From NCBI RefSeq assembly GCF_001194135.2, contig NC_068982.1:44956452-44996056 (forward strand): a DNA stretch of 39,605 bases. Reading direction: 5' to 3'. Origin of the DNA: Octopus bimaculoides (taxonomy: Eukaryota). The position numbers and the translations under genes were made by a program. Positions 4,005-32,575 of this stretch are shown one piece after another (position 1 is the stretch's first letter; the number at the start of each line of letters is the position of its first letter). The notes under the pieces were generated by a model. It worked only from the letters and a program-made list of their open reading frames with translations, made no database searches and was not told the DNA's origin.

Positions 4005-4690
4005 CAGGGTGTCCCAAAAGTCACTGACAGGTTTCAATTTTTAATTATTTCCTTAACTTCACAAATAAATGCGTGGAATTTTGATATAATATAAAGGACA
4101 TAATGGAAATTAATTTGCACAAGTCGAAATTTTGCGACACCACAAAATCACACATGAAAAATGACATCGCTTAAATGGCAGCCATTTTCGGCTTCGCACG
4201 CCCGTGCTCTTCCCAAAACTTGCACCATAACATCCTCAAGAGTTTCAGACCCTACTTCTCTGATTTCTCTATTGATGTTCTCTTTCAGTTGCACCAGGGT
4301 CTCCAGTTTGTTGACGTAAACCCTCTCTTTCAGATATCCCCACAAGAAAAATCCGGGTTTGTCAAATCTGGGTAACGTGAAAGCCGATTGATATTGCCCT
4401 AGTGGGAGATTATTCTCTCTCCAAAGCACTGCCGTAGCAACTGCATTGTTTCTCTTGCGGTATGAGCAGTTACCCCGTCTTGCCGGAATCATGTGTGAGG
4501 TCTACTTTGAATGGCCTTCACGTTCCTCAGATTTTTTTCTTGTGGGGATACCTGAAAGAGAAGATTTACATCAATAAACACACTAAAGACAAACTGGCCA
4601 TGACTTCCCACCCTCCGTTACAGCTGTCCATGCTACGTCATACAACCTTTATAGAGTTCACAGAGCACTGAGCAGTAGTCATGATGGTAT
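4005..4690 (-). mobile_element. Rearranged Tc1/mariner transposon remnant
   Basis: TA followed by terminus CAGGGTGTCCCAAAAGTCA at 4005. Minus-strand transposase C-terminus FFLWGYLKERVYVNK...LKENI...GCHLSDVIF (ORF 4148-4492). A second FFLWGYLKEKIY fragment lies on the plus strand at about 4510-4600. Confidence 0.8.
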
Positions 4691-6452: not shown

Positions 6453-7315
6453 NNNNNNNNNNNNNNNNNNNNNNNNNNNNNNNNNNNNNNNNNNNNNNNN
6501 NNNNNNNNNNNNNNNNNNNNNNNNNNNNNNNNNNNNNNNNNNNNNNNNNNNNNNNNNNNNNNNNNNNNNNNNNNNNNNNNNNNNNNNNNNNNNNNNNNNN
6601 NNNNNNNNNNNNNNNNNNNNNNNNNNNNNNNNNNNNNNNNNNNNNNNNNNNNNNNNNNNNNNNNNNNNNNNNNNNNNNNNNNNNNNNNNNNNNNNNNNNN
6701 NNNNNNNNNNNNNNNNNNNNNNNNNNNNNNNNNNNNNNNNNNNNNNNNNNNNNNNNNNNNNNNNNNNNNNNNNNNNNNNNNNNNNNNNNNNNNNNNNNNN
6801 NNNNNNNNNNNNNNNNNNNNNNNNNNNNNNNNNNNNNNNNNNNNNNNNNNNNNNNNNNNNNNNNNNNNNNNNNNNNNNNNNNNNNNNNNNNNNNNNNNNN
6901 NNNNNNNNNNNNNNNNNNNNNNNNNNNNNNNNNNNNNNNNNNNNNNNNNNNNNNNNNNNNNNNNNNNNNNNNNNNNNNNNNNNNNNNNNNNNNNNNNNNN
7001 NNNNNNNNNNNNNNNNNNNNNNNNNNNNNNNNNNNNNNNNNNNNNNNNNNNNNNNNNNNNNNNNNNNNNNNNNNNNNNNNNNNNNNNNNNNNNNNNNNNN
7101 NNNNNNNNNNNNNNNNNNNNNNNNNNNNNNNNNNNNNNNNNNNNNNNNNNNNNNNNNNNNNNNNNNNNNNNNNNNNNNNNNNNNNNNNNNNNNNNNNNNN
7201 NNNNNNNNNNNNNNNNNNNNNNNNNNNNNNNNNNNNNNNNNNNNNNNNNNNNNNNNNNNNNNNNNNNNNNNNNNNNNNNNNNNNNNNNNNNNNNNNNNNN
7301 NNNNNNNNNNNNNNN
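6453..7315. other. Assembly gap
   Basis: N run. Other gaps: 1790-1799, 8339-8568, 15501-16340, 19793-20218, 23243-23337, 28514-28921, 35451-36076. Confidence 1.
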
Positions 7316-13053: not shown

Positions 13054-13112
13054 GGCGGCAAGATGGCAGAAACGTTAGCACGGCGAGCGAAATGCTTAGC
13101 GGTATTTCGTCT
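13054..13112 (+). mobile_element. SINE-A head (5' part) truncated by retroelement insertion
   Basis: GGCGGCAAGATGGCAGAAACGTTAGCACGGCGAGCGAAATGCTTAGCGGTATTTCGTCT, then unrelated sequence. Confidence 0.85.
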
Positions 13113-13197
13113 CCGTGAGTTTACTGGTCGGACGTGTTATTACTCGCTGCTATTTTTTTTAGTATAACGCCACTATTGTTTGGTGGGCGTTGCTGAG

Positions 13198-14675
13198 ATG
13201 GAGAAACTGAAGACGTATGCAGCAGCGACGGGGAGCCGAGCTTCCGTCGTCCCAGGCTGAAGCAATATGAAATACATTGGAATGAAGACATGGCTGAGAA
13301 GGTTGGAAAATATAAAGAAATGATAAAGATAAATGATAAAGTTGATCCCATCAGAGGAGGAGAGGACGAAGATGGAAATTGGAGTCGTGGAGTATAAATC
13401 ATTTTCAAGGAAAAATAGAATAGAGATTGCAACGAAGGAGGAGATGGAGGAGTGTTTGAAGGAATTGCAAGAAGATGTGTTGTTTTTTTTACAAGAGGCA
13501 AGACATACGCGTCTGTAGAGATCACATTTGTATCGGAGGAGGCAGCAAAGAAATGCGCCAATAAGACGTTAACTAAAGGAAATTGGATGCTCTTTCCCAA
13601 TAAGTTGGGTAGACGTCCAACGTGGATTAGACTGGGTAGGATCCCGCCGAAAATAGAGTTGGAATGGGTAATAGCAGTAGTTTTTTTCTGAAAGAGAAGG
13701 AGAAGATGTAAGGATAATTATGATAAGCAGAACCCAACAAATAAATTGTTGGGGGTATGGATTGGAGGTGCTTTTTATGGCAAGTCAGAAAGTTTACAGT
13801 GACATACCGGAGACACTGGTCAAACTGGACATAATGTTGGAGGGGGAGACCTCCAAAGTGCTACGAATGTGGCAAAAGAGGTCACATTAGAAGAAGGTGC
13901 CCAGAAATAATGGAAAACAAAGAAATGGAAACGCAAGAAGGCGTGATAGAGAGGAAACAGTCACAGGAAGAGGAGCAGAGAGCTGATTTTGAGGAAGCTA
14001 AATCAAGGAAGAGAGAAAGTAGGAGCTCATCGCCGAAAGTCGAACAAGGGAAAAAATACAAATCACAGGATCAAGTGGGATCACTGAGGAAAGAGGATAA
14101 TAGCAGAACATTAACACAGAACCATACAGTCTCACAATCGCACAGACAGACAGATATACAGATGCATAAATACACACATACATACACTCGGAAGCGTAGA
14201 AGATAACGCAGAATTGCAGAAACCTAAAAGCACAGAACCTGAAAACACAGACACACAAACACAACAGGCAGACTTACAGTCACACAAACATGCAGACCCA
14301 CAGACAGATAAACACACAGATATACAGTCACAAAGAAATATAGAAGAACAAACACATGGTAGTACAGAATCACAAAAACAAAAAATAACGGACATACAGA
14401 CGCAGGAGATACATAGGAACGGCATATATTTGATGTCATATCGATATACACAAAAAATAGAAAAGAAGATATCCAAAATAAAAGACATTGTCAAAGTGGA
14501 CCTCTCGGACGGTTGCGATAAGGAGACGAGATGGATTTTAATAGAAAAAGAAAAGTATAAAAAATTAAAAGAGGCTTTCCCGATAGATATAAACCAACTG
14601 GGGCCCGAGGTGAATTTTGAACCCAGCGCTCCAGTGGTGAACTACGAGGAAATAAAAGATTATATAAAATGGTGA
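13198..14675 (+). pseudogene. Frameshifted ORF1 (RRM-like region, CCHC zinc knuckle, low-complexity linker, C-terminal domain)
   Basis: Stitched pieces: MEKLKTYAAAT...; EIATKEEMEECL; TRGKTYASVEITFVSEEAAKK...WIRLGRIPPKIELEWV; WGYGLEV..; LEGRPPK-CYECGKRGHIRRRC (13859-13900). Collinear with ORF 30919-31857. Several +1 indels fall in homopolymer runs (T-runs about 13485 and 13683, G-run 13842-13846). Confidence 0.85.
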
Positions 14676-14850
14676 GTAGTTTTATTTTGGATAAATTATT
14701 GAGATAATTTTGAAAAGAACTATCGAAGACTGTGAAAGGAATTATTGAGAACTGTTTAAATGATTGAAATAACGCGGCCGCCCCGGGGTGGAGCTGGGGT
14801 GGCCGTCCCATCATCATTGTTTAATTTCATTGTTCCATAAAATGTAAGCA

Positions 14851-14959
14851 TTTGAAAGGGGCCAGCCTTGTCATATTCTGTGTGTGGCTGAATCTCTCTG
14901 AGAACTACGTTAATGGTATGCTTGTCTGTGGAGTATTCAGCTGCTTGCGGGTTAATTTT
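14851..14959 (+). mobile_element. Fragment of the SINE-B type-2 tail inside the retroelement 3' region
   Basis: AAGGGGCCAGCCTTGTCA...GCTGAATCTCTCTGAGAACTACGTTAA...GTCTGTGGAGTATTCAG is homologous to about 4930-5030, 35200-35300 and 39220-39315. Confidence 0.75.
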
Positions 14960-15022
14960 ATCCTTATGTGGTAATAAAAAGTAAAAGTGACATCCAATAT
15001 TTGCTGTAGTTATTTGTCTTTG

Positions 15023-19087: not shown

Positions 19088-19650
19088 TTGGGTATAAAAA
19101 AAAATCATGAATAATGCGGTTTTTTATACTTCTTTTATTTTTCAAAATTAAGATAAACAAAGTCCTTTTTTAATCTAAAATATACTCTCCTTCATTTTCT
19201 ACAATACTCTTCCATCTGTCTAGTAGAATTGCAAGGCCCCTATTCCAAAATTCACTTTCCGTGACGAAAAATACTCCTCCAGTACTGTTCTGACCTCGTC
19301 TACAGAATTCATATTTTTTTTCCGTCCAAATGATTTTGAAGACTGCGGAATAAATGAGAATCAAATGGGGAAATGTCCGGCGAATAGGTGAGTGGGGCAT
19401 CGTTTCCCATTCAAACTGCTCCAGCCTGTGGAATGTCATCTTCGCTGTATGTGGTCGAGCATTATCCTGATAGAAGAACACCTTTCGTCTTGAAACCAAG
19501 GATGGTCGTTTTTCTTCAAGCGCTGACTTAAGCCGCTCAAGCAGCTCGCAGTAGATCTCTTTTGTTATCGTTTGGTTTGAGTTTAAAAGTTCAAAGTGGA
19601 CTAAACCTTTCATATCTCACCAAACAGATAACAACACCTTATGTGGGTGA
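19088..19650 (-). mobile_element. 5'-truncated mariner (Mos1/Hsmar-like DD34D) element
   Basis: Minus strand LHPHKVLLSVW*DMKGLVHFELL...VFFYQDNARPHTAK...WETMPHSP, then a frameshift into the YSPD-type motif. Terminal repeat TTGGGT...AATAATGCGGTTTT follows TA at 19086-19087. Confidence 0.9.
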
Positions 19651-21067
19651 AGACTTTCTTTAGCCTGGGGTGCCGGTATTTCTCCTTTCCTTACTCATTG
19701 TCTTTAGCGCTTGACATTTTTATTATCACTATTAGGTCCAAAAACGGTTCATTCGTGAAACGTGACTGCAAAGGAATAGTAATGCAGTATGGNNNNNNNN
19801 NNNNNNNNNNNNNNNNNNNNNNNNNNNNNNNNNNNNNNNNNNNNNNNNNNNNNNNNNNNNNNNNNNNNNNNNNNNNNNNNNNNNNNNNNNNNNNNNNNNN
19901 NNNNNNNNNNNNNNNNNNNNNNNNNNNNNNNNNNNNNNNNNNNNNNNNNNNNNNNNNNNNNNNNNNNNNNNNNNNNNNNNNNNNNNNNNNNNNNNNNNNN
20001 NNNNNNNNNNNNNNNNNNNNNNNNNNNNNNNNNNNNNNNNNNNNNNNNNNNNNNNNNNNNNNNNNNNNNNNNNNNNNNNNNNNNNNNNNNNNNNNNNNNN
20101 NNNNNNNNNNNNNNNNNNNNNNNNNNNNNNNNNNNNNNNNNNNNNNNNNNNNNNNNNNNNNNNNNNNNNNNNNNNNNNNNNNNNNNNNNNNNNNNNNNNN
20201 NNNNNNNNNNNNNNNNNNGACTGTAGTTTCCGGCTTGGAATTTCTAGAACCACGGTTGACACTGACTTACGCTTATTGTCCGATCCCCCATACTGCATTA
20301 CTATTCCTCGAACTTTCCGTTGCGTTGTTGCCTTTATTAAATTCATAAAGCAAAATATGTCGAAATGCTCCTTTGTCACTTCTATTATAGCTTTGAAAAA
20401 ATAGCTGCTAAAATTGAACTGCACTCTTCAAAACTTGCATTAAGAATAAGTACAAAGTAAAATTACTACCTGCTTTTATAGTAAGTTGATGCAGGTAGTT
20501 TATCCCACCACACCTCGGACTTTTAGTTCATGCAACTGAAAAAACCGCATTATGGGTTGTCCATTATCTCATTTATTTAAGAGGATGCGGTGCATTTTGA
20601 GAGTGATCTAGATGCTATGCTTAGCAAGTTGAGCACTTGCAAGAGGCCCCCCACGATGACTCATGTATGACATGTGATCAAAGTTATTCACTATAAAATG
20701 TATTCTTTCATATTTAAAATAATAATGTGGTGTAATTTGGCTACTATTCCTAGTGAGTCAATCTCACAGAGGCTCCCACGTTGATTCGATGGATGAAAGT
20801 CCAAAGTAATGCGTTTATGTCAGTACTCTTCTGCTTCAAGTAACCACTTAAAACTATTAGATTTTGTACAGACCTTTTTTTCGTTGTCTTGGGAGAGTCA
20901 TTACGCCAATAATGATAACACACATACACAGGTTCAAATCCAACTTCTGTATTTGTCAATTGACTAATAATAAAGAGTTCATATCAAAAATCTTGAAGTG
21001 TGTGTGTGTGCGCGCGCGCACGTATTTGTCTGTAAACGACTTTTGAAATAATATTTCCAGCTTTTCA

Positions 21068-21125
21068 CGCTTTGTCTGTCCTTGTTTGTCCCCTATGTTT
21101 AGCCCCTTGTGGGCAATAAAGAAAT
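21068..21125 (+). mobile_element. Very short 3' tail fragment of a Tx1/L1-like element
   Basis: GTCCCCTATGTTTAGCCCCTTGTGGGCAATAAAGAAAT shares the tail with 21862-21899, 156-180 and 32400-32424. Confidence 0.7.
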
Positions 21126-21482
21126 AAGAAACTTATTTTCATCTATGGCAAAACATTCTCTATAAAGGGTTCAGGTGTGGCTCGCCATAGATCATAGGAA
21201 TTAATTCTAAGGATTTTTATGGACAGAATGATCCTCCCAAAGTGCAATGGTATTATATCAAGTATTTTGCAAGACAAATACGTAAAGGAAATATATTTTA
21301 GTCTTGGTCTAAAATAGTTTTGGAATAAACCAATTAGAGCGTGGAAGACATAACAGCCATTAAAAACGCACGGAAAGAAACAATTTAGAGTTGCTTCTTT
21401 TGCATATTTGAATTTTATTCAGCCTAGAGTTCTCTTTGCAAAGTCGTTGGATTGTTTATTCATTGACTTTATATACTTCAGA

Positions 21483-21900
21483 AACGAGGGTGAATGGTAT
21501 AAAGTCAGGCATTTCCATATCTAGCTCTGCACTGGTGAATTATTTCACCTTCCACCTCAAAAGGAAAGTAGAGCTAGAGAGAAAATACCTGACTGCGAAA
21601 ATGTTTGAGAGTCGATGGAAGAGTGTAGCACGAAAGTTGCGAATAAATGTAACCACATGAATGAGACGAAGGACTCATCTCGGCTATCAGTGACGAGGCG
21701 GGGCACGAGGGGTCCGTGCTAAACCCGCCTTACCACTCCATCCGTAATGTCTTCCGGTCTGTCGCATCATCCGATTAAAATTCGATTTCATTGTAAAATT
21801 TTTTAAATGCATGTTTCTGTTAATTCATTCGTTTTCATCTGACCCCAAATCAGGTTGTATCGTCCCCTCTATGTCGCCCCTTGTGGGTAATAAAAAAATG
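21483..21900 (+). mobile_element. 5'-truncated L1/Tx1-like LINE (ORF2 C-terminus plus 3'UTR)
   Basis: Perfect 19-bp TSD TGACTTTATATACTTCAGA at 21464-21482 and 21901-21919. Open frame to stop 21660 (YFTFHLKRKVELERKYLTAKMFESRW...INVTT*) resembles L1/Tx1 ORF2 ends (F...W). Tail GCCCCTTGTGGGTAATAAAAAAAT. Confidence 0.8.
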
Positions 21901-22865
21901 TGACTTTATATACTTCAGACTGGCTGAGGTGACTTGAGTGCGTGGCTTTGACAAACTGCAAAACAACGAAATGTGTATCTCATTCTCGCTGTCGCTTCTG
22001 GAACGGTTTTGTTTCATCTAGTTCTGAAGTACATTGTTTTTGAACACATTACGTCTATAAAGGTAGCTTCCTTGCAGCCTCTGGCTTTTCATAAAGTTGT
22101 ACTTACGTTAAGGAGGTCATATGATGATTGTTTTTGTGCGTTTTTGAATGACAAATATGTCTTCAACGCAATAATTGTTTTAGTTTCAATACAGTCTCAC
22201 ATCAAATCACTTGCCAGGCAAGTAGATCTCCAACATTTTGGAATTCATTATATTTTTAGATAGAATTAATTCATGTGCTCTGTAGTGTATTATTTAACTT
22301 TTTTCATAAAAATATATATGGATGTGTGTATGAGGTGTAAATGCGTGTTTATGCCCCTGCCTCTGATTAGGTATGCAGCTATGTAATGCCTCGAGCTGCA
22401 AGGAGTTAAACACCCCCTCCTTTGCATAGTTAAACCATTGTCCTATAGTGGAAGCTCCTCATTTGAGCCAAGTACTGATGGAGAAAACTCTAATGGAAAC
22501 TATGTCTCATGACAACAGTGAGATAGGGCCAACGCTACGGACTAGCCAAACAAGGCAACCATCTGGGGCGCTAAAATGGGGCTCCATGAAAACTTGGTAA
22601 TAAAGAAAGCGGGAAAGGTCGCTCCCGGAATAAAGCGAGGATGATGATGGAGGACATGAGAGACGTGTGGTATTATGACCTGCCGATGATTTGACATGAA
22701 ATATTTTGCTCAGACACTCACTCAGTGATATACATATTTTACATTACTCGTTTATAATCATAAAACCATAGATTTCCTGTTCACAATTTAACTACAATTA
22801 TTCGACTGCATCTTTCAGTTCGTGTTATAAAGGTAAATAGCTGGATGATGTTGCAGAAAACATTG

Positions 22866-30730: not shown

Positions 30731-30782
30731 GGAAGCGAGCTGGCAGAATCGTTAGCACGCCGGGCAAAATGCTTAGCGGTAT
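30731..30782 (+). mobile_element. SINE-A head (5' half of split SINE)
   Basis: GGAAGCGAGCTGGCAGAATCGTTAGCACGCCGGGCAAAATGCTTAGCGGTAT; continues at 32425. Confidence 0.9.
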
Positions 30783-30918
30783 AACGGCTCAGTGAATTGT
30801 TGTGAATTATTGTGAATACTGATGTGTTACTTTGTGAAAACTGTCTCGGTGAATAATTGTGATTTTTGTGGAATTATTACGGTTGCATTTCACGTGAGCT
30901 GCTGCATTTTCCCCAGCT

Positions 30919-31857
30919 ATGGTAAGTGGTAGTGTCTCCAGTATGGAGAGCTACGCCAAGGTCACTGCGGTGAGGAAGCCAGTGCCGCTGGAAACCAAGT
31001 TAATCAAGTTGGATATGGAGGTGGTGACCAGAAGCAGGAATTTGATAGAAGTTGAGGGAGACTCGTACAAGTTATGTCCCCCAAAAGAGACTAAAGAAAC
31101 TAAAATTCTGAGGACAGTAGTGTATCGTACACAGGCTGTAGAAACCGGTAAAATTGAAATGGTGACGGAAGAGGAAATCGAGGAGTGCTTGGGTGAAATT
31201 GTCAATGAAGCCACGTACATCAACAGAGGAAGAAAGTTCGGTACGGTTGAGGTGAGGTTCGCCACTGTAGAAGAGGCAACCAAGCATGCAACCAACATAT
31301 TAAGAAGTGAGAAAATAGCATTACTACCAAGTTATAGAGGAAGAAGTGTGAAAATACGAATTCCCAGAGTTACACCAGATATTAAACCAGAGTGGTTGGT
31401 TGCAACAGTGCTGGCTGCAACCAAGGAGGAGCCGGAATTGGGACCAGTGGCGATAACAAAAGTGTGCAAATGGTGGGGATTTGGACTCGAAATGTGGCCT
31501 TTTGCCACATTCGAGGACATAGAAAGAATTCCCTACCAGATAGAAGTGGAGGACGAGAAAACGTTAAATGTCGCAGTCGAGGGAAGAAAACCAAATTGTT
31601 ATATATGCTGGGAGAGAGGTCATATGAAGACCAAATGCCCCCTATATGAGTTCACACAGCCACAGCAAGAGAAAGCACAAACAGAGGAGGAAAGAATTGT
31701 AGACCAAACTGAGGAAATAAAAGAGAGACAGAAGTGTGAAACCGAGAAAACAAAGAAGAACGAAAATGGAGCTACTAACCCTAAAAAGCGAAGGAAAAAT
31801 AAGTCAAAGGAACGGTCAACAGAACACAAAAAAAGAGATAAAAAAGCCAGAAACTAA
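30919..31857 (+). CDS. L1/Tx1-type ORF1 nucleic-acid-binding protein (RRM-like region plus CCHC knuckle; ZCCHC3-like architecture)
   Basis: 312-aa ORF with N-terminal SYAKV, GTVEVRFATVEEA, VKIRIPRVTPDI..EW, then VAVEGRKPN-CYICWERGHMKTKC (CX2CX4HX4C, 31597-31638) and a K/E-rich tail. Confidence 0.8.
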   Translation: MVSGSVSSMESYAKVTAVRKPVPLETKLIKLDMEVVTRSRNLIEVEGDSYKLCPPKETKETKILRTVVYRTQAVETGKIEMVTEEEIEECLGEIVNEATYINRGRKFGTVEVRFATVEEATKHATNILRSEKIALLPSYRGRSVKIRIPRVTPDIKPEWLVATVLAATKEEPELGPVAITKVCKWWGFGLEMWPFATFEDIERIPYQIEVEDEKTLNVAVEGRKPNCYICWERGHMKTKCPLYEFTQPQQEKAQTEEERIVDQTEEIKERQKCETEKTKKNENGATNPKKRRKNKSKERSTEHKKRDKKARN

Positions 31858-32206
31858 TAATGTACAAGAGGAGGAGGAGAGAACGGATAAAGATGTGAAA
31901 TACAAGGGGGTTTTGATGAAGTACGAGAATTGCGAGCAGATGGAGAGAAAAGTCGAGAGGTTGAGAGAAATAATAAGAGTGAAAATGCCGGAGAAATGTG
32001 CTGAAAAATGCATTTTGAAAAGTGAGGAAAGATGCTGGGAGTGCATAAAAGAACTTGGTGAAAATATAATAACGAAACGGATATGGTTGGTGGAGACACC
32101 ACACCCTAGAACTGATTATTTGCAGTTGTTAAGGACGGACGTAACAATGATTAATGGAAGAAAAATAACGCGAGTATTTCAATTTTTTGAGTTGCAAAAC
32201 CGTTAA
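31736..32206 (+). CDS. Overlapping +1-frame ORF carrying a C-terminal domain of unknown function (either frameshifted ORF1 continuation or a second ORF)
   Basis: GVLMKYENCEQMERKVERLREIIRVKMPEKC aligns with GIYLMSYRYTQKIEKKISKIKDIVKVDLSDGC in the 13-kb element. Confidence 0.55.
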   Translation: MKPRKQRRTKMELLTLKSEGKISQRNGQQNTKKEIKKPETNNVQEEEERTDKDVKYKGVLMKYENCEQMERKVERLREIIRVKMPEKCAEKCILKSEERCWECIKELGENIITKRIWLVETPHPRTDYLQLLRTDVTMINGRKITRVFQFFELQNR

Positions 32207-32424
32207 AATGTTTACATGACGTTGAACGTAAAAGTGACAAACTGGATAAATGTAACCACCCGACTTGGGGGATCGAGTGGACATTGCGCCTCATTTTTTT
32301 TCATTCTTGCATATTATCATTTTATTTTAATTACCCCGATTTTATGTTTGCGGTTTGTACTGTCTTTATGTTTTGTGATGTCTTAAAAATTCTTTGTATA
32401 GCCCTTTATGGGTAATAAAGAAAT

Positions 32425-32575
32425 CGGCATTTCATCTGTCTTTACGTTCTGAGTTCAAATTCCGCCGAGATTAGGGGACGATAAAATAAGTGCTAATTAA
32501 GAAATGAAGTCGATTACATCGACATTCCCTCTTAAAATTTCAAGCCTTATACCTGTTGTAAAAAGAATTATTTAT
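32425..32575 (+). mobile_element. SINE-A 3' half (continuation of 30731-30782)
   Basis: CGGCATTTCATCTGTCTTTACGTTCTGAGTTCAAATTCCGCCGAG resumes at the duplicated target. Confidence 0.9.

Follow-up and report, generated by a model that had tools for sequence, protein, structure and literature searches.

How does a protein-coding element with neither reverse transcriptase (RT) nor endonuclease come to lie inside a SINE, and is its position there a matter of chance? The question is raised by a 39,605-nt stretch of the Octopus bimaculoides genome (GCF_001194135.2, NC_068982.1, 44,956,452-44,996,056, forward strand), here called the window, along which positions are numbered unless another locus is named and in which every feature described lies on the forward (+) strand. 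A SINE in the window is split between G and CGGTAT by a 1642-bp insert, copy 1, at 30783-32424. The SINE head (30731-30782) matches positions 3-57 of the SINE reference at 87% identity and terminates ...GCTTAGCGGTAT; the insert starts AACGGCTCAG and finishes GGGTAATAAAGAAAT, and the SINE picks up again at 32425 with CGGCATTTCATCTG, its 3' part occupying 32425-32575. A 6-bp target-site duplication, CGGTAT at 30777-30782 and CGGCAT at 32425-32430, flanks the insert, and the junctions at 30782/30783 and 32424/32425 bear out the first-pass annotation, which had placed an insert with such a duplication inside a SINE. That annotation had also found no RT or endonuclease in the insert, and tblastn with a complete LINE ORF2 indeed recovered no ORF2 traces within 30783-32424. 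Copy 1 is probably a full-length, ORF1-only, non-autonomous LINE derivative; against an unlinked copy on another chromosome (L005) it shows 62 substitutions in 1332 aligned bases, an identity of 95.3%.

Within copy 1 a 5'UTR (30783-30918; 96.8% identical to L005 9591-9717, the start AACGGCTC being common to both) precedes an ORF1 coding region at 30919-32206 that is broken by one extra A in an A7 run (31828-31834). The ORF at 30919-31857 encodes 312 aa; when the frameshift is read through, ORF1 goes on in the frame of the ORF at 31736-32206, giving 428 aa once the extra A is taken out. The frame is open across the corresponding site in the intact relatives P0001, P0002 and P0006, and the O. 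vulgaris homologue of the gene is an intact ORF of 467 aa. Because ORF1 extends through the A7 run to 32206, the 3'UTR is 32207-32424 and not, as had been thought, everything past 31857. The protein consists of an N-terminal region, a central core, one CCHC knuckle, a K/E-rich linker and a C-terminal domain. Compared with the ORF1 of an intact LINE from O. vulgaris (L003), the core (31201-31668) shows 35% identity over 156 aa (E 2e-29), and tblastn matched it too, which upholds its earlier description as an ORF1-type protein, and the CX2CX4HX4C knuckle reported with it is seen once, at the end of the core (31597-31638). The zf-CCHC match of the 312-aa ORF in Pfam is weak, and CCHC knuckles were also matched in PDB; of the RRM-like region named in the first-pass annotation, which together with a CCHC knuckle would make a type I ORF1p of the Tx1-clade kind, nothing was detected by Pfam or PDB profile, the CCHC knuckle alone being found, and hhalign against a fish ZCCHC3-like ORF1 returned a probability of 1.5%. 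An AlphaFold2 model of the 312-aa ORF, built on a 14-row alignment, has a pLDDT of 31.5 and is unusable for fold. The C-terminal domain (31880-32203), a motif recognised by eye, weakly resembles the C-terminus of LINE ORF1 (BLAST not significant), and a similar domain is present in a further window copy, copy 3, and in O. vulgaris ORF1-only proteins.

The 'half' element of the first-pass annotation is no one-off deletion. The ORF1-only state recurs: three O. bimaculoides copies have it, as do arrayed and solitary copies in O. vulgaris and the diverged lineage L006, and there is no ORF2 in window copies 1 and 3, in L005, L002 and L006 or in the units of L001, L003 and L004. In a small tree the ORF1-only proteins form their own clade with bootstrap values of 94.5-100%, and 419 representative relatives were found in Octopoda-type data. 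Between O. bimaculoides and O. vulgaris, pN is 0.34 and pS 0.80, and the ORF1-only genes are under purifying selection.

Autonomous relatives with the same tail, which had been named as a point to check, do exist: O. vulgaris, O. sinensis and Argonauta have full-length LINEs in which a homologous ORF1 is accompanied by an ORF2 bearing APE endonuclease, RT and zf-RVT and by the tail CCTTGTGGGTAATAAAGAAAT. The O. vulgaris copy at L003 11082-16297 has an intact ORF2 of 1129 aa, with Exo_endo_phos at residues 23-225, RVT_1 at 509-750 and zf-RVT (PF13966, E 1.5e-8) at 969-1021, and which aligns collinearly to human L1 ORF2p across residues 3-865 (E 1e-64). Its best named match is 'Transposon TX1 149 kDa protein' at 319 bits, against human L1 at 222 and plant L1 at about 150. 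The partner LINEs belong to the L1/Tx1 group; placement in the Tx1 clade proper, suggested by a match name and bit scores, is tentative. L1-Tx1 families have been annotated, and reported to be active, in O. vulgaris (PMC13282606). The window itself holds a 5'-truncated autonomous LINE from this family, reduced to its 3' end (21482-21900; the last 59 ORF2 codons, 3'UTR and tail), which lies outside any SINE between the two halves of an 18-bp duplication (21464-21481 / 21901-21918).

What joins these elements is their 3' end. In the 3'UTR of copy 1, ATAAATGTAACCAC at 32246 matches the LINE ORF2 stop region, AATAAA (32414-32419) stands 5 nt from the element end, and the conserved tail ...AGCCCTTTATGGGTAATAAAGAAAT (32380-32424), with a small GCCC/GGGT hairpin, is common to the autonomous LINEs and to one SINE subfamily. 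Octopus and Argonauta alike conserve this tail. The ORF1-only unit and the LINE of O. vulgaris are 95.7% identical over their final 47 nt and have their 5'-terminal sequence in common; the O. bimaculoides subfamily has only the tail consensus in common with the LINE fragment in the window, and the nine loci (~200 kb) sampled yielded no autonomous O. bimaculoides LINE bearing precisely the CCTTTATGGG variant. Folding of the 3'UTR RNA was no different from that of shuffled sequence (z -1.08), the 4-bp tail hairpin, with one compensatory change, being its only conserved fold. The tail of about 45 nt is presumed to be the RT recognition site.

Is the position in the SINE fixed? Two loci came in because they contain the element, and the subfamily copies examined number three, two in the window and the L005 copy, together with one LINE copy. 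Copy 2 is cut by the window edge; its last 180 bp (1-180) are 96% identical to 32245-32424 and are followed, in identical register (CGGTATTTCG), by the 3' part of a different SINE copy (181-345) that is 64% identical to the SINE part after copy 1. Two occurrences of the 24-nt junction GGGTAATAAAGAAATCGGYATTTC fall within the window, where 0.00 are expected, and a third lies in an O. bimaculoides locus that is not linked to it. SINE position and orientation are identical in 3/3 subfamily copies (copy 1, copy 2 and L005), and the two whose 5' side is visible, copy 1 and the L005 copy, have a SINE head in register and the 6-bp duplication. The element ends of the subfamily are 94-97% identical, whereas the host SINEs are 64-81% identical and differ in subfamily, indels and tail type; differences in the SINE are seen within 4-10 nt of the junctions, and identity falls exactly at both. 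Because the ends are so much more alike than host SINEs of different subfamilies, the three subfamily copies are independent, site-specific insertions. The same drop disposes of a reading in which SINE sequence from position 47 on would be the element's native 3' end, since identity collapses at the junction, and ectopic gene conversion between SINEs was likewise rejected because SINE bases within 4-10 nt of both junctions vary between copies.

Two further copies extend this picture beyond the subfamily. One RT-bearing O. vulgaris LINE copy has its 3' junction at the same SINE register. Copy 3 (13106-14982), a decayed and distantly related ORF1-only element with frameshifts, no ORF2 and the tail CCTTATGTGGTAATAAAAAGT, still shows remains of a CCHC knuckle at 13844-13903, and its ORF at 14214-14675 encodes a C-terminal domain; it is directly adjoined upstream by a SINE head (13055-13105) terminating ...GCTTAGCGGTAT, so that its 5' junction is at the same CGGTAT as that of copy 1, and it has no SINE remainder on its 3' side. 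The proposal that the element targets a SINE is thus sustained by three of three subfamily copies, in a biased sample of that size, and by one LINE copy. Target specificity has been defined as more than 20% of copies being flanked by the same target sequence (PMC4494074), and here all three are, n=3 and sampling being biased. Other family members occupy non-SINE sites with 17-22-bp duplications (21482-21900 in the window; L003 SINE-A), and the machinery overall is therefore not strictly SINE-specific.

It is quite probable that copy 1 represents a full-length ORF1-only derivative of an octopod L1/Tx1-group LINE that is mobilised in trans and inserts at a fixed site in a SINE. Such a derivative would have kept the LINE 5'UTR, a complete ORF1 and the LINE 3' end, with ORF2 gone except for its last few codons. 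It would supply its own RNA-binding ORF1p and take ORF2p, with its endonuclease and RT, from autonomous relatives, which would recognise the common tail of about 45 nt. Integration would be by target-primed reverse transcription at one fixed site in an abundant SINE, the junctions placing the bottom-strand nick between SINE G46 and C47 and the top-strand nick 6 nt on, which yields the CGGTAT duplication; the element always has the orientation of the SINE. Specificity may come from an ORF2p endonuclease that recognises a particular sequence, as those of Tx1-clade elements do, or from RNA guidance, or from both, and we regard these as about equally likely; under RNA guidance the transcript end would pair with nicked SINE DNA, as for R1/R2-type elements. 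Given that AATAAA lies 5 nt from the element end, transcripts should stop 10-30 nt into the SINE.

Together, SINEs and LINEs account for about a quarter of octopus genome DNA, and octopus SINEs are reportedly tRNA-derived (Ohshima & Okada 1994). In the host SINE, ARAGORN found 0 tRNA genes and Rfam no tRNA match; A and B box-like motifs, TGGCAGAAACG and GAGTTCAAATTCC, were recognised by eye. Insertion should silence the Pol III promoter of the host SINE copy, because it parts the presumed boxes by 1.6 kb containing eleven runs of at least four T, and the SINE may serve the element as the safe-harbour target proposed in the first-pass annotation. A bolder account, which we consider rather unlikely, makes of the element a long-lived ORF1-only hyperparasite that rivals the SINE for the LINE RT, on the grounds that LINE, ORF1-only element and SINE have the same 3' tail, and that homes into the SINE through an RNA-guided step in which 10-30 nt of SINE sequence, gained by obligatory read-through beyond the terminal AATAAA, pair with the nicked SINE. 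Were this so, each insertion would disable a competitor's Pol III promoter and provide a harmless landing site, and specificity would sit in the element's transcript or ORF1p and not in the borrowed endonuclease.

Fixed position could also arise by routes that involve no targeting. One ancestral SINE insertion might have been multiplied by segmental duplication, by composite 'SINE + insert' retrotransposition or by SINE 3' transduction, and some features of the loci are of the kind that these processes leave: tail|SINE junctions in another register (tail|AAGAAACGTTAGCAC) occur twice in L005, as in a composite family, and the common flanks of O. vulgaris L001, L003 and L004 (495 bp downstream of the LINE in L003 and L004, by BLAST of the flanks) indicate that segmental duplication of such arrays occurs. 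A common ancestral insertion is nevertheless highly improbable for the subfamily copies, given that identity drops exactly at both junctions from 94-97% in the element ends to 64-81% in the host SINE parts, and that a transduced composite landing at random would not be expected to leave an in-register SINE head together with the 6-bp duplication, as seen in copy 1 and L005. That in-register head also bears on template jumping, by which an RT copying SINE RNA from the tail as far as a preferred stop or 5' end at position 47 would jump to the 3' end of ORF1-only or LINE RNA and so make tail|SINE-47 chimeras and head-to-tail chains without target specificity. Such jumping would accommodate the chains that have no clean duplications between their members: in L002 LINE, ORF1-only element, truncated LINE and SINE from position 47 follow one another, in L003 and L004 ORF1-only units are followed by a LINE, and L007 has a LINE array. 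It would also accommodate a tandem-duplication breakpoint at SINE position 46/47 that has no preceding tail. It leaves unexplained, however, the SINE head (positions 1-52) that stands in register before copy 1 and the L005 copy with the 6-bp duplication, and the inter-unit junctions of L004 hold variable copies of downstream target, as is found for repeated insertion at one site (PMC4494074); template jumping is accordingly improbable. Sequential homing is the tentative best fit to the array junctions of the O. vulgaris loci. A 17-mer beside the L003 ORF1-only unit was considered as a target duplication or element 5' end and set aside, the array junctions showing variable downstream-target copies.

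A different objection is that the ORF belongs to a host CCHC gene family, or to processed retrocopies of one made by some LINE. Public annotation does speak of a 'CCHC-type domain-containing protein' or 'uncharacterized protein', and the O. vulgaris tandem arrays, in which one or more ORFs of 467 aa are intact, and the purifying selection would suit a host gene. Yet the protein is homologous to an ORF1 that stands directly upstream of ORF2 in complete LINEs, the units have the LINE's 5'-terminal sequence and last 47 nt, and the copies are interspersed, frameshifted and accompanied by target duplications, with introns and poly(A) tail absent, all of which makes a host origin extremely improbable.

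As a LINE derivative mobilised in trans, the octopod element invites comparison with HAL1, a non-autonomous derivative that encodes ORF1p only and obtains ORF2p in trans (PMC5753468, citing Smit 1999, Bao & Jurka 2010). Both encode only ORF1p and rely on ORF2p from elsewhere. HAL1, however, is a derivative of mammalian L1 that ends in poly(A) and whose ORF1 is of type II (Transposase_22); it originated on several occasions, and no target specificity is known for it. In the octopod elements ORF1 is of the CCHC type and the 3' tail is a specific one, not poly(A), in common with their LINE; they form one old clade (in a small tree) and include one subfamily at a fixed SINE site. With no Transposase_22 match in the copy 1 ORF and no poly(A) tail, the octopod element is by its sequence an analogue of HAL1 and not a member.

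Targeting has its parallel in Tx1 families and their dependants, which enter a different transposon at a single site, inserting there in tandem (Tx1L into Tx1D; Tx1-Mar and SINEU-3 into Mariner-N4_AMi), or, like Keno, target U2 (PMC4494074). Site-specific insertion of this type into other repeats is known from Xenopus and crocodilians. The octopod system resembles them in having an APE-type LINE related to L1, a fixed position in a multicopy sequence, non-autonomous partners with the same target and tandem insertions, the partner LINE bearing APE, RT and zf-RVT and matching 'Transposon TX1' best by name. O. vulgaris relatives insert in the same way at another target. It differs in that the target is a SINE which itself bears the same LINE-type tail, that the dependant encodes ORF1p and is not a short non-coding SINE, and that other family members insert non-specifically. 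With R1/R2-type elements, in which, as cited in PMC4494074, integration at the site can become more precise when the RNA ends 3' in target sequence acquired by read-through or co-transcription, the likeness is that the position of AATAAA in the octopus element predicts read-through into the SINE; R2, by contrast, has a restriction-like endonuclease, R1 belongs to another APE clade, both target rDNA, and RNA guidance in octopus is purely inferred. The last ~45 nt common to LINE, ORF1-only element and one SINE subfamily recall LINE-SINE pairs of the stringent type, but there the classical partner is a non-coding SINE, whereas in octopus the tail also serves a dependant that encodes a protein and has the SINE partner as its insertion site. 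We found no report of a SINE as fixed target or of a targeted, ORF1p-encoding dependant, and we rate the element as joining two habits known separately, a HAL1-like ORF1-only state and Tx1-like targeting.

That a complete ORF1 is kept under purifying selection across Octopoda while ORF2p is foreign bears on the purpose of ORF1p, and argues that it gives a strong advantage in cis. The element likewise raises the matter of how a non-autonomous element targets more sharply than the machinery it borrows, for which the endonuclease, RNA-target pairing and ORF1p are candidates. The elements are also relevant to octopus genome annotation, in which several copies are labelled as 'CCHC-type domain-containing' host proteins.

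By its protein homologues, the window belongs to Octopus bimaculoides. The 1642-bp ORF1-only insert termed copy 1 (30783-32424, plus strand) begins with AACGGCTCAG and ends with GGGTAATAAAGAAAT. It interrupts a SINE on the same strand, the head of which (30731-30782) ends ...GCTTAGCGGTAT and the remainder of which opens at 32425 with CGGCATTTCATCTG. The CGGTAT and CGGCAT that bracket the insert in a direct reading of the sequence constitute a 6-bp target-site duplication, and this arrangement is as the first-pass annotation described it. The reported absence of reverse transcriptase (RT) and endonuclease was borne out by tblastn with a complete LINE ORF2 as query, which found no remnant of either in the insert. 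The end of the ORF (30919-31857, plus strand, 312 aa) must be revised: a surplus A within the A7 run (31828-31834) breaks the ORF1 frame, the frame of intact relatives continues through the ORF at 31736-32206, and removal of the surplus A yields a protein of 428 aa, so that the 3'UTR spans 32207-32424. The assignment to ORF1-type proteins stands, given homology to LINE ORF1, and the ORF carries a single CX2CX4HX4C knuckle (31597-31638, plus strand), but the RRM-like label was not confirmed: neither an RRM nor a ZCCHC3-RBD was matched in Pfam, a PDB profile search returned CCHC knuckles only, hhalign against a fish ZCCHC3-like ORF1 aligned the expected columns at a probability of 1.5%, and the AlphaFold model has a pLDDT of 31.

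The window has two instances (166-189 and 32410-32433; expected 0.00) of the junction at which GGGTAATAAAGAAAT passes directly into CGGYATTTC, and a third lies at L005, a locus on an unlinked O. bimaculoides chromosome (CM046603.1), where the 5' side reads ...GCTTCGTGGTAT followed by AACGGCTC and both the junction and the 6-bp duplication are those of copy 1. The decisive control for independence is the comparison of element identity with flank identity. The last 180 bp and the 5'UTR of the element are 94-97% identical among copies, whereas the host SINE parts are 64-81% identical with differing indels, their tail types differ (…CCATTGTGGGCAATAAAGAAAT in L005, …CAAGCCTTATACCTGTTGTAAAAAGAAT after copy 1), and their bases diverge within 4-10 nt of both junctions. 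Segmental duplication is excluded by this pairing of a conserved element with diverged SINE flanks, and the same pattern excludes a hitch-hiking SINE-plus-insert composite, 3' transduction and, with the differences 4-10 nt from the junctions included, gene conversion. What it leaves is that the three copies inserted repeatedly and independently, always at the same nucleotide and facing the same way. At L002 of O. vulgaris, a degenerate LINE that carries an RT terminates in ...GGTGGGCAATAAAGAAAT against TCGTATTTCGTCTG, in the identical SINE register, and copy 3, a decayed and distant ORF1-only element, adjoins the same CGGTAT (13100-13105) at its 5' end, with no SINE found after its tail. The proposal of SINE-specific insertion is upheld for a sample of three subfamily copies and one LINE copy, two of the loci having been chosen because they contain the element.

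Two further observations concern this position. At L005 9459-9536 the head of a SINE stops at the target-site position with ...GCTTAGTAGTAT; a stretch of 24 nt, tgctttaaaaagaaaagaaaagtc, separates it from the SINE that hosts the L005 ORF1-only copy. At L003 400-960 (O. vulgaris, minus strand) a tail-bearing SINE is succeeded by a local tandem duplication, and the breakpoint of the latter, ccttgcaat/aggtatctcg, again lies at SINE position 46/47, possibly a general hot spot for nicking or truncation.

Complete LINEs are present in the genomic loci of the ORF homologues, and full-length copies that bear ORF2 and share the tail, which the first-pass annotation proposed seeking, were found in O. 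vulgaris, O. sinensis and Argonauta hians. The LINE at L003 (OX597816.1, 11082-16297) comprises a 5'UTR, a two-piece ORF1, an intact 1129-aa ORF2 and a 3'UTR. Its ORF2 contains Exo_endo_phos, RVT_1 and zf-RVT domains, is collinear with human L1 ORF2p over residues 3-865 (E 1e-64, 222 bits), and finds its best named homologue in a coral 'Transposon TX1 uncharacterized 149 kDa protein' (319 bits; plant L1 elements, ~150 bits). These features, together with the 13 recently active L1-Tx1 families in a recent O. vulgaris repeat annotation (PMC13282606), place the partner by sequence in the L1/Tx1 group, and membership of the Tx1 clade is likely. The copy 1 ORF matches the L003 LINE ORF1 at 35% identity over 156 aa (E 2e-29) and also matches ORF1 of the full LINEs at L007 (O. 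vulgaris), L008 (O. sinensis) and L009 (Argonauta hians). All four LINEs with homologous ORF1 share the tail CCTTGTGG..AATAAAGAAAT, within which a small GCCC/GGGY hairpin is conserved. An O. vulgaris ORF1-only unit and LINE are 95.7% identical over their last 47 nt, and their ORF1 proteins only ~30-35%; near-identical tails despite diverged ORF1 are classically the mark of a dependant element in which the RT recognition site of the partner has been retained. The ATAAATGTAACCAC motif located where the ORF1-only 3'UTR starts (32246) corresponds to the final codons and stop codon of LINE ORF2, as seen at 21643 in the window and at ~16050 in L003, and probably marks the breakpoint of an ORF2 deletion. 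In Argonauta (L009, BAAFZT010000045.1, 8001-13242) the full LINE combines a homologous ORF1 with an ORF2 that shares 52% identity with that of O. vulgaris, and its tail is CCTTGTGGCGAATAAAGAAAT; a SINE-like repeat nearby (6993-7131) has the same tail, so the LINE-SINE tail partnership appears older than the Argonauta-Octopus split.

ORF1-only units of ~1.5-1.9 kb occur in loci of both O. bimaculoides, where copies 1 and 2 (1-180) and L005 form one subfamily, and O. vulgaris, as single copies (L002, L003, L006) and tandem arrays (L001, L004), one unit having an intact 467-aa ORF. A neighbour-joining tree built on 229 aligned ORF1 columns separates the ORF1-only proteins, as a clade, from the four LINE ORF1s included (bootstrap 94.5-100%). 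With multiple loci in two species and a clade of their own, a one-off deletion is set aside, and the sequences argue for a lineage rather than an accident. Over the first 250 codons the ORF1-only genes of the two species differ at pN 0.34 and pS 0.80 (saturated), which shows that the protein has been under purifying selection through the history of the lineage. An exhaustive HMMER search returned 419 representative relatives, those named among the matches being from Octopus species and Argonauta. Copy 3 (13106-14982) carries frameshifts, a CCHC remnant (13844-13903) and a C-terminal-domain ORF (14214-14675). A diverged ORF1-only element with a 389-aa ORF lies at ~7850-9735 of L006 (O. vulgaris OX597833.1). 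No ORF2 match was found in the 17 kb of that locus, and the element's tail, GGCCTTGTGCCTATAATAAAGAGAAAT, is similar to the second octopus SINE tail type, GGCCTTGTGCCTAGAGTAGAAAAGAAT. Retroelement ORF1 copies (P0001-P0012, P0120, P0164) are annotated in UniProt/RefSeq as host proteins ('CCHC-type domain-containing protein', 'uncharacterized protein LOC...', 'EPM2A-interacting 1-like'), and some gene models splice around frameshifts.

Same-family insertions elsewhere indicate that the borrowed machinery as a whole is not strictly SINE-specific. The 3' end of a 5'-truncated autonomous LINE at 21482-21900 (the last 59 ORF2 codons, 56% identical to the L003 LINE, with 3'UTR and tail) lies in non-SINE DNA and is flanked by an 18-bp duplication, TGACTTTATATACTTCAG (21464-21481 and 21901-21918), and the tail-bearing SINE at L003 400-960 (minus strand) has a 22-bp duplication, ATTGTGTACTCTCTTTTCCTAA. 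Either LINE subfamilies differ in endonuclease specificity, as they do within the Tx1 clade (PMC4494074), or some of the specificity comes from the ORF1-only element itself. A second recurrent junction, in which SINE or LINE tails ending ...GGGCAATAAAGAAAT pass directly into AAGAAAC(GTTAGCAC...), a SINE from ~position 20, is seen at window 21060-21125, L005 11068-11130 and L005 36145-36100 (minus strand) and may mark a dimeric SINE family.

Head-to-tail chains of ORF1-only units and LINEs are present in O. vulgaris. A full-length LINE lies directly downstream of one ORF1-only unit at L003 (OX597816.1) and of at least eight at L004 (OX597820.1); L001 (OX597814.1) has at least seven ORF1-only units, L007 (OX597840.1) at least three full-length LINEs with a period of ~5.28 kb, and L002 a LINE, an ORF1-only unit, a truncated LINE and a SINE from position 47. 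The ORF1-only arrays at L001 and L004 have a period of ~1.78 kb. Inter-unit junctions at L004 are variable, imperfect 16-24-nt copies of the post-array sequence AACATGGAGGAAAGCACC, with which an old, 5'-truncated fragment of ORF1 begins, a pattern that corresponds, on this analysis, to the Tx1-dependent elements of Kojima, in which sequential insertion at one site produces tandem insertions sandwiching a target duplication (PMC4494074). Junctions at L001 are identical throughout. The arrays are read as repeated homing to another target, followed at some loci by unequal crossing-over, and RT template jumping is a possible contributor to those chains that are without duplications.

In the mechanism proposed here, ORF2p from an autonomous relative would recognise the tail and carry out target-primed reverse transcription, while the element's own ORF1p would coat its RNA in cis; the bottom-strand nick would fall between G46 and C47, with the top strand cut 6 nt downstream. 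The specificity may be seated in the endonuclease, the usual determinant according to PMC4494074 (citing Takahashi & Fujiwara 2002), or in RNA-target pairing. The AATAAA at 32414-32419 lies 5 nt before the element's end, so that transcripts should be cleaved and polyadenylated 10-30 nt inside the SINE, and such read-through would leave the RNA with a 3' end complementary to the SINE; for R2-type elements, work cited in PMC4494074 reports that co-transcribed target sequence strengthens site-specific integration. The insert parts the putative A and B boxes, which were identified solely by visual inspection, and eleven runs of at least four T lie within it, so the host SINE copy should no longer be transcribed by Pol III. 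Neither ARAGORN nor Rfam detected a tRNA in the SINE.

The octopus element works like HAL1, which is ORF1-only and reliant on L1 ORF2p (PMC5753468), but is not a member of that group, having another ORF1 type, no poly(A) tail and another host lineage. Its targeting resembles that of Tx1-clade elements that insert into other transposons, Tx1L into Tx1D and Tx1-Mar with SINEU-3 into Mariner-N4_AMi (PMC4494074). Neither a SINE serving as fixed target (here one with the LINE's own tail) nor a targeted dependant encoding a conserved ORF1p was found in the literature searched. The first-pass interpretation is essentially right and the finding real, though the element lies nearer to known Tx1 and HAL1 biology than the first-pass rating implied.

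Eight N gaps, 3497 bases in all, interrupt the window, which also has roughly a dozen copies of SINEs and, at 4148-4492 and 19170-19613 on the minus strand, ORFs resembling fragments of mariner/Tc1-type transposases.
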